Source: Adineta vaga (Eukaryota > Animalia > Rotifera). From it: a DNA stretch of 64,000 nt. Under the pieces are notes generated by a model. That model saw nothing but the letters and a program-made list of their open reading frames with translations. It searched no databases and was not told where the DNA came from. Shown here in pieces: positions 7,971 through 50,911 of this stretch. The stretch's first letter is position 1; each line of letters opens with the position of its first letter. The stretch covers positions 2,852,001 to 2,916,000 of the forward strand of contig CP075492.1 of NCBI GenBank assembly GCA_021613535.1, read 5' to 3'. Position numbers and translations under genes: made by a program.

Positions 7971-8015
7971 ATGGGTGTGGGTGTGGGTGTACTCATCTTA
8001 CCCACACCCACCCTA
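7968..8015. repeat. Telomere-like hairpin element
   Basis: GGGTGTGGGTGTGGGTGTACTCATCTTACCCACACCCACCC. Confidence 0.8.
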
Positions 8016-42759: not shown

Positions 42760-43681
42760 TCAATTGATTTTTTCGTGTAGTGATTTAAACGGTGGTATCC
42801 AATCAGGCTGAATGAGTTTCCCCGAATATTCGAAAGCGACAGATTTATCATCGTTTGGAATTAAATTTGGATTAATAGATCCATTGTTATGTAGATCAGC
42901 CTTGCGAATAACTTGTCTTATTTCAGTTAGAATATTTAATTCACGTAAATTCTTAAATTGATCATGTGAATTGAAAGCAATGGCTGGTGTAATGAATTGT
43001 CGAGCTTTACGTGAACTATTTGGATGTAGACCAACGATGAAAAAAGCACGTCCACCAATACTAAAACCTGTTTATCCACAAAGATGTTTGTCGATTAATA
43101 AAATCGATAAGATCATGCCATAATAATTCTGTTGTCTCTTTACTCGTTAATATATCATAAAAACCGAAATTAAACGCTTTTCGTCGAAAAATGATTTTTG
43201 CATTCAAACAGGGAAATTTTGTACTCAATATATACTGCCTAAATAGTTCTTTCATAATGGATTCTTCGTCAGAAGATATTGTCTTAGGTTCATTGCAATC
43301 TGGTACAACTCGATGTATCGAATTTGTCTTGAGGAAATAACCAAATTCTTCTGTTTTTAATCCATCACGAACAATTTTACCAATCCAACATTTACGATTT
43401 AAATATTGCTTGTGTTGATCTGATTTAAGATGCACTTCATGAAATATTCGAGTAACATCTCTACCTGCTAATTGCTTGAATATCTCAAGACCACCAGAAT
43501 GATTCTTCATCAATGCAAGACAATATACATCATCATCTATAATAATCCATCCATCATTTTTATGTTGTTCTACTTCGATGAGTGTGATCGTGCGATGAAA
43601 GAAACCAAGTCCAAGTATAAAACGAGACAGAAATCGTCGAAAAAGAGATAGAAACGATACCGTGAATACCAATAAAGGCAT
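42760..43681 (-). pseudogene. Cytochrome b5 domain fused to a YqcI/YcgG-family (GntA/DcsA-like) heme protein; frame break and apparent deletion near 43068
   Basis: b5 part: WIIIDDDVY...HSGG...AGRDVTRIFHEVH. YqcI/YcgG part: FRQYILSTKFPCLNAK...FGFY, then in another frame FSIGGRAFFIVGLHPNSSRKARQF..PAIAFNSHDQF...GSINP...EYSG...W.PPF. Confidence 0.78.
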
Positions 43682-44335: not shown

Positions 44336-45814
44336 TTACACGTACAAACTAATATAATCATCAATGTCAGTTGATTCAAATCCTGGTTGTGATTGCTCAA
44401 GTATCTTCTGCACTCTTTGTCCGTCAAATCTTCCACGAAGATGCTGCTCAAATTTAGCCATAAGTAGTGGTTTTCCTTCTTCACGACGTTTTCTATGTCC
44501 AATTGGATAATTTACTTCGACTTCATCTAGTTCTGTGCCATCGTTGAGAGTAATTCTGAGTGCATTACCAATATAGCGCTTATTGGGATCATGATATTCT
44601 CGTGTGAAACGAGTATCTTCCACACAGGTAATTTTCGTACGCATATCATCGATTCGTGGATCGGAAGCAATGGCATCTGTGTAGTCGTCGGTGGTCAAGC
44701 GGCCGTAGATGAGCGGTATGGCTGCGATGTATTGAATGCAATGATCACGATCAGCAAAGTTGTAGAGTGGACCAGATTTATCAATGATACGCATTGCAGC
44801 TTCTTGGGTACGAATACGAACGGATTTAATATCTTCAGGAACATTTACTCCTTTATCTTTAAGCAAGTTATGACAGATCATGGCAGCTTCAGCAACAGTT
44901 TGTGCATGAAACTCGGCTGGATAAGAGATTTTAAATAGTACATTTTCCATCACATACGATCCAAATTCTCGTTGAAGCTTAAATTCTTGTCCTCGAAAAT
45001 GCACGTCATAGAAACCCCAAGTATTAGCAGTCAAAGCAGATGGTATACCACTTTCACCTTTTTGAACCAATAATGCCAAATTTACAGCACGCATGCAGGC
45101 ATCACCAGCTGCCCAGGATTTTCGTGACATAGTGTTAGGTGCATGTCGGTACGTGCGAAGACTTTGCCCATCGATCCATGCATGTGAAATAGCATCTATT
45201 GTTTGTGATTCAGTCAAACCTAGAAGTTTAGATACGACTGCGGTCGTAGCTACTTTTACCAATACGACATGATCTAAGCCTACTCGATTAAATGAATTTT
45301 CCAAAGCAAGTACACCTTGGATTTCATGAGCCTTGATCATCGCTTCAAGAATATCCTGAACCTTGAATACTTTTGCACCTTTGGGTTTATCTATGGCACT
45401 GGATGAAGATGAACAGGAATACTTAGCAGTTTGAGTTAAATAATCAGTCACTGCCAATATACCTCCAAGATTATCGCTTGGATGTCCCCATTCAGCTGCA
45501 AGCCAACAGTCATTGTAATCCAACCATCGAATCTGCGTACCAATACTAAATGCTGCTCTAACAGGATCTAGAACATGATTTGTACCCAGAACTCGTGCTC
45601 CATTAGGAATCGTAGCTCCAGGTACGACTGGACCGATTAATCGAGTACATTGTGGATGTTTGAGTGCTTCTAAGCCACATCCAAGTGTGTCGAGAAAGCA
45701 TAATCTCGCAGTATCAAAAGCGAGCGAAGATGTAATAGTATAGTTGTGTACATAAGATGCAATGTCTCGAAGTATCTTATCGACGATTGGGCGCACATTC
45801 TGTATTTTATTCAT
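44336..45814 (-). CDS. prpD: 2-methylcitrate dehydratase, intronless, 492 aa
   Basis: DTLGCGLEAL, RWLDYNDCWLAAEWGHPSDNLG, LRTYRHAPNTMSRKSWAAGDA, FKISYPAEFHAQT, ADRDHCIQY, YPIGH. Confidence 0.96.
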   Translation of the reverse strand: MNKIQNVRPIVDKILRDIASYVHNYTITSSLAFDTARLCFLDTLGCGLEALKHPQCTRLIGPVVPGATIPNGARVLGTNHVLDPVRAAFSIGTQIRWLDYNDCWLAAEWGHPSDNLGGILAVTDYLTQTAKYSCSSSSSAIDKPKGAKVFKVQDILEAMIKAHEIQGVLALENSFNRVGLDHVVLVKVATTAVVSKLLGLTESQTIDAISHAWIDGQSLRTYRHAPNTMSRKSWAAGDACMRAVNLALLVQKGESGIPSALTANTWGFYDVHFRGQEFKLQREFGSYVMENVLFKISYPAEFHAQTVAEAAMICHNLLKDKGVNVPEDIKSVRIRTQEAAMRIIDKSGPLYNFADRDHCIQYIAAIPLIYGRLTTDDYTDAIASDPRIDDMRTKITCVEDTRFTREYHDPNKRYIGNALRITLNDGTELDEVEVNYPIGHRKRREEGKPLLMAKFEQHLRGRFDGQRVQKILEQSQPGFESTDIDDYISLYV

Positions 45815-45974
45815 AGTATATCTAAAAGGTATGCAATTTATATTTATTCAAATTATTCAAACATTACGTAACAATAAACCATCCAGTTATTATTGTTTAT
45901 TTTTATCATTTTTTTACAATAGAAAGTTCAACGTTTTTGTTCTTGAGTTTACTGCACATTCCTTCTGACTAAGT

Positions 45975-47474
45975 TCATTTTTTGAATTGATCAGCTTCTG
46001 TAGATTCAGAAAACGCAGTTGTGCTTCCTTCTCCTCCTAAATTTTACTGCTAAAAGTGACTTAATATTTAGTCTTTAACGTTATTTTACCTGTTATAGCC
46101 ATGTTCACCAAATCGAAATATCCAGTTCCAACTTCTCTTTGATGTCGAATTGCTGTATAACCATGCTTTTCAGCTTCGAATTCTGCCTGTTGCAACTCTG
46201 AATAGGCAGTCATTCCACGATCCTTGTAATTCCGTGCAAGTTCATACATCGCATAGTTCAATGAATGAAATCCGGCAAGTGCAATCAATTGAAGTTTATA
46301 ACCCATTGCTCCGAGTTCCACGTGAAATCTTGCAATTGCTTCTGGGCTCAAATTTGCTTGCCAATTGAACGAAGGAGAACAATTGTATGTCAACAATTTT
46401 TCAGGGAACTCCTTTTGTATTGCCTCTGCGAATTTCTTCGCTTGTTCTAAATTTGGTGTTGATGTTTCCCACCAAAGTAGATCTGCAAATGGTGCTGAGT
46501 TGAGACTTCTTTTGATGCAATGTTTAAGACCAGTTCCACTTTTTAGTCGAAAAAATCCTTCGGAAGTTCGACCAGCTGTCATATCAATGAATTCTCTATC
46601 TCGTTCATCGATATCTGAAGTCAATAGTTTCGCTGATTCGGCATCTGTTCGACTGACAATTATGGTTGGTACGCCACAAACATCTGCTGCCAAACGAGCA
46701 GCATGTAAATTTCGTAGATGAGTACTACTTGCGATCAAAACCTGAAATTGTTTTTGTTTTTTTTTGAACGATGAAATGCTTATTTTTCTTACCTTTCCAC
46801 CTAAATGACCACATTTCTTCTCCGATGCTAATTGATCCTCAAAATGAATTCCAGCCGCTCCAGCTTCAATAAAAGCTTTCGTGATTTCAAAACAATTCAA
46901 TGGGCCACCGAATCCAGCTTCAGCATCGGCAACAATTGGAACAAACCAATCACGTTTTCTTCCACCTTCAGATTGTTCAATTTGTGAAGCACGCTCTAGG
47001 GCTTTGTTGATTCGACGAACCATTTCTGGTCCAGAATTTGATGGATATAAACTTTGATCTGGATACATTGATCCAGCTGTATTTCCATCTGCTGCAACTT
47101 GCCAACCTAAACATACATTCAATATTTTTCTTGAATAGAAAAAAACGAAGAGATTTACCTGACATATGAATGGCGCGTAAACCAGCACGAACCATTTGCA
47201 TTGCTTGATTTCCTGTGACAGCCCCTAGTGCTTGAATATATGGTTCCGTATGTAACAAGTTCCATAATTTGTTCGCACCGAGTGTCTAAAAAGTGAGTCA
47301 CTTTTTCTACCATTAAATTGAACAAGATATCTTCAAATTACTTACCGCTAAAGTGTATTCAATTTGGATGGTACTGCGCAATCGATGTACTACATCAGGT
47401 GCATAAATCCTTTGAATTCCATTCCAGCGACCTTTGGGTGCAGTTCGCACCAGTTCATAGAAAACTTTATTCAT
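45975..47474 (-). CDS. aceA: Short bacterial-type isocitrate lyase family enzyme, possibly acting as a methylisocitrate lyase; exons 47474-47346, 47285-47159, 47106-46793, 46741-46090, 46036-45975
   Basis: [19 protein letters not shown]..., [83 protein letters not shown]. All four introns are GT-AG and keep the frame. Confidence 0.95.
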
Positions 47475-49798: not shown

Positions 49799-50911
49799 TT
49801 AAAATATCGAATAATTAGAAAGATAAAAACTATAATTTGAATAAAATTCAAAAAGATTTTGATAAAACCATTTTGAAGACATATCTTGTTTAAAAACTTG
49901 AATATAATTAATGAAATTTTGTTTATCTGAAGAGGAAAGATTCTTTGAGAGAAAACATTGAAATTCTTCATTGAAATTTCCTTTGAGAATTTGACAAAAA
50001 GATTTTCGAAAGATTTGTTCCATAAGAAATCGTTTTTTCTTCCATAATTGTTTAACATTATGAACAATAAATTGTTTTGTATGAAATAATGTTTGAGAAT
50101 AGGGTGCTGGTTGATAATTTTTTGGATATGATCGTAATTTCCAATATCTTGGTAATTTATCAATTCCATTGAATGGTTTTGCAAATTGTTCATATAACCA
50201 TAAGTATCTTTGCTCAGGATTATTAATTGTTAATCGAATAAATCGATTCAAAGTATCGGAAAGACCAAAACCAGTTATATCAATTAAAATTCGTGATGAA
50301 ACATCATAAAAAAGTGTATTTGTTGTATATTCATTAACATAAATCGGAATATCTTTTCGTAATTGAAATGGATAACTTTCAAATGTATTATTGAATTCTT
50401 TAGGACCTAAAATTAAATGACCAGTTGAGAAAAAATAACATTGACCGAAAAGATTTTTAAGAATTTGATTTTGACATAAAATTTTCATTTGAGATTTTTT
50501 ACAAAAATATTCAGCATCAATATCGTTTGGTTTTAAATTAAGAATTAAATCTCGAATAGCTCCACCATGAATAAACATTTCACAATTTAACGAAGAAAAT
50601 ATTGAAAATAGATTTCCAAATGTAAGTTTATTTAAACCAGGAGCTTGTTCATCTTCAATAATATGTTGAAATAAATTTGAAAATGTTTTCGATTGATAAT
50701 ATTTTGTTTGATTATAAAATTCTTTTTTATCCTTTCCTTTTCGTTTAGAATTAAAATATTCTTGAGAAACTTCTCGAAATTGTTCTAAATCTCGTTTATC
50801 TCTTAATAAAAATTCATCGGAATTTTCATGGCGAAATTTCAGTTTTAATCGATAACAATCAATCAATTGGTTGATTAATAAAAGGAATAAAATCAATCGT
50901 TTTTCTTTCAT
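49799..50911 (-). CDS. Predicted secreted protein with a class II nucleotidyltransferase (PcnB/CCA-like) head domain
   Basis: Signal peptide MKEKRLILFLLLINQLIDC; MFIHGGAIRDLILNLKPNDID (motif A); EYTTNTLFYD (similar to DFTINALYYD); IDITGFGLSD. Confidence 0.75.
   Translation of the reverse strand: MKEKRLILFLLLINQLIDCYRLKLKFRHENSDEFLLRDKRDLEQFREVSQEYFNSKRKGKDKKEFYNQTKYYQSKTFSNLFQHIIEDEQAPGLNKLTFGNLFSIFSSLNCEMFIHGGAIRDLILNLKPNDIDAEYFCKKSQMKILCQNQILKNLFGQCYFFSTGHLILGPKEFNNTFESYPFQLRKDIPIYVNEYTTNTLFYDVSSRILIDITGFGLSDTLNRFIRLTINNPEQRYLWLYEQFAKPFNGIDKLPRYWKLRSYPKNYQPAPYSQTLFHTKQFIVHNVKQLWKKKRFLMEQIFRKSFCQILKGNFNEEFQCFLSKNLSSSDKQNFINYIQVFKQDMSSKWFYQNLFEFYSNYSFYLSNYSIF

Follow-up and report, generated by a model that had tools for sequence, protein, structure and literature searches.

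A gene pair encoding an isocitrate lyase (ICL)-family protein, here called the lyase, and a 2-methylcitrate dehydratase (prpD) was identified in a 64,000-nucleotide stretch of DNA (the window) from the bdelloid rotifer Adineta vaga. The genome measures 100.8 Mb in six contigs, and the window falls on contig 3. The lyase gene contains five exons separated by four GT-AG introns of 51-60 bases and encodes a protein of 427 amino acids (Table 1). No targeting presequence is evident at the N-terminus of the lyase, encoded by exon 1. All four exon joints were found in the contigs of one run presumed to be RNA, and one joint was found in a second run (runs X8/X17). A bacterial window or contamination was ruled out by the presence of the four introns in RNA-derived contigs, and also by the size and six-contig structure of the genome and the existence of orthologues in bdelloids. 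The closest relatives of the window genes come from Adineta and Rotaria. Directly downstream of prpD, positions 43061-43681 (minus strand) encode a cytochrome b5 domain and, after it, a YqcI/YcgG (GntA-like) domain. Positions 49799-50911 (minus strand) hold an intronless open reading frame with a predicted signal-like N-terminus and a weak match to a poly(A) polymerase head domain (PcnB-like).

Table 1. Positions of the lyase, prpD and associated features in the window, and of the paralogous gene on contig 5
Feature	Position	Strand	Remarks
prpD, 2-methylcitrate dehydratase	44336..45814	-	Intronless, 492 aa; TIGR02330 712 bits (cut-off 458)
Intergenic stretch, 160 bp	45815..45974	-	TTTTAG resembling a splice acceptor, seven bases ahead of the prpD ATG
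Lyase exon 5 and stop	45975..46036	-	Protein ends at the point where the paralogue runs on into malate synthase
Lyase exon 4	46090..46741	-	R221, W280, E282, N310, S312, S314; specificity positions L342 and A344
Specificity motif (13 residues)	46265..46303	-	L342 = 46288-46286 (TTG); A344 = 46282-46280 (GCA)
Lyase exon 3	46793..47106	-	Metal-binding D146/E148/E175; catalytic loop KKCGH at 46819-46805
Lyase exon 2	47159..47285	-	His83 (47168-47166) replaces the near-invariant Tyr89 of ICL and PrpB
Lyase exon 1	47346..47474	-	ATG at 47474; splice 47285/47346 present in an RNA-derived contig
ICL-malate synthase gene, contig 5	about 3843346-3847190 (L004:5347-9192)		159-base intron joins ICL in frame to malate synthase A

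The prpD gene is present as a single copy in the genome, and its product is 72-74% identical to the yeast enzymes. The bdelloid prpD genes form one clade nested in the Saccharomycotina (support 98) next to Tortispora (90), and the named non-bdelloid sequences among the top 120 matches are all fungal. The TTTTAG sequence is also found seven bases before the prpD start in A. ricciae (L058, about 7985-8003), in which 75 bases separate the two genes. This sequence and the short spacing may mark spliced-leader trans-splicing of an operon-like lyase-prpD pair. Position 45821 is the end of one RNA contig that covers the 3' end of the lyase. In a metagenomic bdelloid PrpD (P0122; L059/L134), the N-terminus is extended by a short Arg-rich stretch that resembles a mitochondrial presequence; both Adineta proteins lack it.

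The family of the lyase was examined with profile and homology queries consisting of single exons or of the open reading frame that naturally continues across intron 3, and the joined model was compared with stored sequences by local scripts. The best profile matches of exons 3 and 4 are PF00463 and NF011645 (short AceA-type isocitrate lyase). Exon 3 scores 48 bits on TIGR02317 (PrpB) versus 191 bits on NF011645, and the lyase departs from PrpB proteins (about 295 aa, KRCGH) in its length of 427 aa and its KKCGH loop. The predicted model of the A. ricciae orthologue, which speaks to the fold of that protein and not to the specificity of the window lyase, superposes on Brucella ICL with a TM score of 0.96 and an rmsd of 1.2. 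Apart from the specificity positions L342 and A344, the residues listed in Table 1 for exons 3 and 4 (W280 corresponds to W287) and the catalytic Cys184 are retained relative to E. coli AceA, and the KKCGH loop, metal ligands, Arg232 and succinate-binding Asn/Ser residues of the short AceA-type ICLs are all kept.

The preliminary description had reported a change of specificity residues in the motif LQLIAL, and this change is real. In an alignment with E. coli AceA (58% identity), L342 and A344 of the lyase fall on Phe349 and Thr351, respectively; the solved ICLs read FQFITL or FQFVTL at the same place, without gaps. Two other details of that description did not stand. The first L of the motif is not meaningful, as F occupies this site in the orthologues and L is found at it in Actinomarina ICLs whose specificity Phe is unchanged, and KKCGH does not mark an ICL, as a Saitoella protein annotated as 2-methylisocitrate lyase also contains it. 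A further active-site change, which had not been described earlier, replaces Tyr89 with His (His83). Phe349, Thr351 and Tyr89 of ICL are thus replaced by L342, A344 and H83 (the H/L/A set), and each change requires one base (TAT/CAT, TTT/TTG and ACA/GCA for Tyr/His, Phe/Leu and Thr/Ala, respectively). Sequencing error at L342 and A344 was ruled out, since contigs of two independent runs (X8 and X17) cover both codons with no other letter, and the same L and A are shared by A. ricciae and a metagenomic bdelloid.

The effect of substitutions at these two positions has been described in other enzymes. In a fungal review (PMC10534831, reviewing Muller et al. 2011), F455L and T457S of A. fumigatus are reported to raise methylisocitrate lyase activity and to lower isocitrate lyase activity, and E. 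coli AceA F349L/T351P is reported to behave like these fungal changes. The same review singles out Phe to Leu as decisive for losing ICL function and Thr to Ser (T457S) for the gain of function. The Leu at the F455 position is present in the rotifer lyase, in which QLIALAG aligns without gaps to QLISLAG of Saitoella, whereas the Ser at the T457 position is absent and Ala is found in all three bdelloid lineages. The combination of a smaller Leu with a small, hydroxyl-free residue at these positions suggests room for an additional methyl group. The characterized changes at the Thr position are Ser and Pro, and the rotifer Ala would to this extent count against a methylisocitrate lyase. By descent, as judged from its sequence, the lyase is an AceA-type ICL that lacks the specificity residues of ICLs and belongs to neither the fungal methylisocitrate lyase family nor PrpB.

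The replacement of Tyr89 lies outside the known recipe, because Tyr89 is kept in PrpB and in fungal methylisocitrate lyases and the change Y40F strongly lowers the activity of Coxiella PrpB, in which the Tyr is nonessential (bioRxiv 10.1101/2025.01.06.631558). Y89H adds uncertainty to the assignment of methylisocitrate lyase activity. A metagenomic clade of long-type eukaryotic ICL-family proteins (P0512, P0523 and P0536; L133:6001-7908) has His at Tyr89 together with Ile/Ser at the specificity positions and is possibly another independent methylisocitrate lyase. This unrelated clade, as a single independent case, hints that His may accompany a widened pocket.

The frequency of such motifs was determined in 185,579 prokaryote genomes and the JGI metagenomes using a DNA pattern for Phe or Leu at the first specificity position and any non-Thr residue at the second, a pattern that did not extend to Leu next to an unchanged Thr position, to AGY-encoded Ser or to motifs with differences elsewhere. 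The scan gave 28 stretches in the prokaryote genomes and 70 in the metagenomes, mostly F/S of Ca. Actinomarina with a few F/A and F/P. Every one of these keeps Phe, and the pair of Leu and a non-Thr residue matched by the pattern was found in neither collection. Within the limits of the pattern, QLIA is thus not common among true ICLs, a possibility raised in the preliminary description. Among representatives at 50% identity, Leu/Ser with an intact loop is found in fungal-type methylisocitrate lyases, and Leu/Ala is also found in one degenerate cluster without the catalytic loop (P0438). In the Ca. Actinomarina ICLs, Ser stands in for the conserved Thr and Phe is unchanged; the two genomes checked have no other ICL. 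Short copies with F/P and F/A are found in Janthinobacterium and Duganella, in addition to a longer second gene of the ICL family.

A second ICL copy that is 80% identical to the window lyase was identified on contig 5. This paralogue shares all four intron positions of the lyase, has one more, and reads YMSGWQ, KKCGH and FQFVTLAG, with the canonical F/T pair. The fusion to malate synthase matches bdelloid proteins of 982-990 aa and the bifunctional ICL-1 of nematodes, and similar fusions occur in other eukaryotes among the matches listed. The window lyase does not contain the malate synthase half. Because the glyoxylate shunt is served by the contig 5 fusion gene, the window copy was freed from this role.

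The origin of the lyase was investigated with quick trees with SH-aLRT support and with the AU test, in a sample containing two fungal methylisocitrate lyases. The three H/L/A proteins form a clade with an SH-aLRT of 99, or 90 when the five diagnostic columns are removed. This clade sits inside the bdelloid ICL clade (support 100), which clusters with the ICL-malate synthases of nematodes and of other eukaryotes and, further out, with alphaproteobacterial AceA. A scenario in which a fungal methylisocitrate lyase arrived along with the fungal prpD was rejected, as the joint clade gave a p-AU of 7.4e-7 with the diagnostic columns removed. The nesting of the lyase in bdelloid ICLs and of prpD in yeasts indicates that the two genes have different origins. 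Judged from these trees, the parent of the lyase is the rotifer's own ICL family, of the nematode-like ICL-malate synthase type, duplicated inside the bdelloids. The nearest rows to the H/L/A clade are stand-alone F/T copies of Rotaria and other bdelloids (support 81-84 only), which suggests that the malate synthase half was lost first and the pocket was changed later.

The H/L/A set and an adjacent prpD are found in three bdelloid lineages: A. vaga, A. ricciae and a third bdelloid known from metagenomes. A. ricciae contains a QLIALAG lyase 75 bases upstream of prpD, and the metagenome contigs of the third bdelloid contain a QLIALAG lyase tail to tail with prpD. The arrangement is thus tandem in two lineages and convergent in one, and the genes flanking the pair differ between the A. 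vaga window and A. ricciae, which indicates that the pair stayed together through changes of place and orientation. Among the matches listed, all Rotaria lyase copies carry F/T, and no prpD of Rotaria appears. Five derived residues at near-invariant columns are common to all three lineages (Y89H, M172T, V183I, F349L and T351A in E. coli numbering), of which the clade-specific T161 and I172 of the lyase lie in exon 3. Y, F and T are invariant in the other 254-255 close homologues, and none of about 255 close homologues carries the H/L/A set. Since F and T are invariant in all 255 close homologues covering the site, the L/A pair is not considered a chance occurrence. The dN/dS of the lyase is 0.105-0.145 at a dS of 0.74-1.23 among the three lineages and that of prpD is 0.09-0.10; by these ratios, the H/L/A lyase is under purifying selection. 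An A. ricciae annotation (P0260, 901 aa) describes an ICL-PrpD fusion. A true fusion is not supported, as the other A. ricciae assembly has two genes and the RNA-derived contigs of the window splice exon 5 with its own stop and 3' UTR.

The gene had been interpreted at first as a bacterial-type AceA that had convergently turned into a methylisocitrate lyase, in keeping with the neighbouring prpD. Convergence is well, if indirectly, supported by the positions of the changes, the canonical paralogue, the linkage to prpD and the selection, and no Leu/non-Thr pair was matched in prokaryotes. However, the lyase is an intron-containing animal gene from the rotifer ICL family and not a bacterial gene in a bacterial operon. 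The prpD gene is indeed adjacent, with a linkage conserved in three lineages, but its origin is yeast and not bacterial.

Other genes related to the methylcitrate pathway were sought in the genome. Homology searches found no PrpB, the only other family member being a PEP mutase, which leaves PrpD without another dedicated lyase downstream. The PEP mutase gene (contig 2, 1855283-1855933; L015) contains an EDKLFPKTNS loop and points to phosphonate synthesis. No dedicated methylcitrate synthase (PrpC, McsA or Cit3) was found in searches that a highly fragmented gene could escape, and the cycle is therefore incomplete as classically defined. The single citrate synthase locus is of the animal type and has Ala where fungal McsA has Gly. 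Mammalian citrate synthase forms methylcitrate when propionyl-CoA accumulates (PMC6710289); human citrate synthase is without methylcitrate synthase activity according to a fungal review (PMC10534831). Three aconitase-family loci are present. The genome also retains methylmalonyl-CoA mutase and a propionyl-CoA carboxylase beta-like gene, so that the lyase-prpD route is not obligatory. No paper on a methylcitrate pathway in bdelloids was found in a search mostly of sources outside subscription journals. A 2012 survey of foreign genes in bdelloids does not mention the lyase or prpD enzymes in its text or in the supplements searched, and the literature refers to a bdelloid malate synthase and an ICL-annotated gene only in passing.

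The window gene is probably a bdelloid ICL duplicate that was convergently specialized as a 2-methylisocitrate lyase and that works with PrpD on 2-methylcitrate. The predicted activity (EC 4.1.3.30), which forms pyruvate and succinate from 2-methylisocitrate, rests on residues and context. With the smaller Leu and Ala, the glyoxylate pocket would gain space for the methyl group of pyruvate, and isocitrate turnover would fall. In the proposed route, the ordinary mitochondrial citrate synthase would make 2-methylcitrate from propionyl-CoA as a side reaction, PrpD would dehydrate 2-methylcitrate, aconitase would hydrate the product to 2-methylisocitrate, and the window lyase would cleave the latter to pyruvate and succinate. 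Because neither protein has an evident presequence here, the lyase and PrpD are probably cytosolic. The pair would serve as a 2-methylcitrate clean-up and a B12-independent propionate overflow beside the normal carboxylase/mutase route. The glyoxylate shunt would fall to the F/T paralogue with its malate synthase fusion.

An alternative is a dual enzyme that keeps substantial isocitrate activity, like wild-type M. tuberculosis ICL1 and P. aeruginosa AceA, with the changes tuning the ratio of the two activities. Many ICLs cut both substrates (PMC6788997, PMC11982470), the fold and all other active-site residues of the lyase are ICL-like, and in 28 prokaryote genomes, including two Actinomarina in which the variant is the sole ICL, the enzyme keeps Phe and has only its Thr exchanged for Ser, Ala or Pro. 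However, these variants all keep Phe and Tyr, PMC10534831 attributes the loss of ICL function chiefly to Phe to Leu, and the retained canonical paralogue removes the need for isocitrate activity. A dual enzyme is thus considered unlikely. It is also rather unlikely that His/Leu/Ala confers a different or wider substrate range, such as another methylisocitrate stereoisomer, a larger 2-alkyl-isocitrate or another 2-alkylmalate-type compound, with a diverged PrpD. Y89H is located on the side of the substrate hydroxyl, and characterized ICLs, PrpB and the two fungal methylisocitrate lyases compared all lack it, the same His is paired with Ile/Ser in the unrelated long-type clade, and without a dedicated methylcitrate synthase the incoming mixture of isomers may differ from that of the classical cycle; PrpD, however, is a typical 2-methylcitrate dehydratase whose close identity to the yeast enzymes argues for the standard intermediate. 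A catalytically weakened or non-catalytic duplicate, linked to prpD by incidental clustering of foreign genes, is very improbable: three changes at near-invariant active-site positions could be damaging and other foreign-looking genes occur in the neighbourhood, but dN/dS is about 0.1, the catalytic Cys loop and metal ligands are intact, the same three changes were held over a dS near 1, the gene is expressed and spliced, and the linkage was kept through changes of orientation and flanking genes.

Some bdelloids may run a working chimeric methylcitrate pathway composed of host citrate synthase, yeast-derived PrpD, host aconitase and the ICL-derived H/L/A lyase as a methylisocitrate lyase, the lyase and prpD possibly being co-transcribed as a two-gene operon; the likelihood of this is put slightly short of even. 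Such a pathway, if true, would be the first in an animal so far as the literature search found. An animal would then have assembled a new metabolic route out of one gene gained by horizontal transfer and one remodelled duplicate, would possess most of the microbial route for clearing toxic propionate by-products, and would dispose of 2-methylcitrate, a compound that builds up in human propionic and methylmalonic acidaemia. The lyase itself would show that the fungal and engineered switch from ICL to methylisocitrate lyase has occurred once more in nature, independently and on the short AceA scaffold. As the unswitched parent is present in the same genome, the specificity code is testable residue by residue.

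At the level of sequence, the H/L/A solution is unseen in characterized enzymes, and with it an animal has most likely arrived independently at a third way of cleaving methylisocitrate. Like Mcl of A. fumigatus and Icl2 of S. cerevisiae, the lyase originated from an ICL duplication, has 2-methylcitrate dehydratase as its partner, and has Leu in place of the Phe and a small residue in place of the Thr. It differs from these enzymes in its separate origin (41-42% identity), its short AceA type (427 aa, whereas the fungal proteins are 567-594 aa), its Ala instead of Ser and His instead of Tyr89, the absence of a presequence, and its animal host. The nematode ICL-1 and the bdelloid ICL-malate synthase belong to the same lineage as the lyase, which is 65% identical to Caenorhabditis ICL-1 and 80% identical to the contig 5 paralogue; the lyase has the intron positions of this paralogue, and its catalytic residues are those of the lineage. 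In contrast to these proteins, the lyase has no malate synthase domain, has H/L/A for Y/F/T and is linked to prpD.

Bacterial PrpB (EC 4.1.3.30) shares with the lyase the superfamily, the predicted reaction, a prpD neighbour, and Leu with a hydroxyl-free residue at the specificity positions. However, the identity is 34% over 230 residues only, PrpB is a protein of 296 aa with KRCGH and Tyr, and neither prpC nor prpE lies beside the rotifer lyase. The engineered E. coli AceA F349L/T351P, as described in PMC10534831, has the short AceA scaffold and changes at the same two positions, and the rotifer gene resembles a natural version of it with Ala instead of Pro and with Y89H, M172T and V183I in addition. 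[quoted passage not shown] Toxoplasma has the full enzyme set with PrpB, whereas the rotifer lyase is home-made and the synthase is apparently missing.
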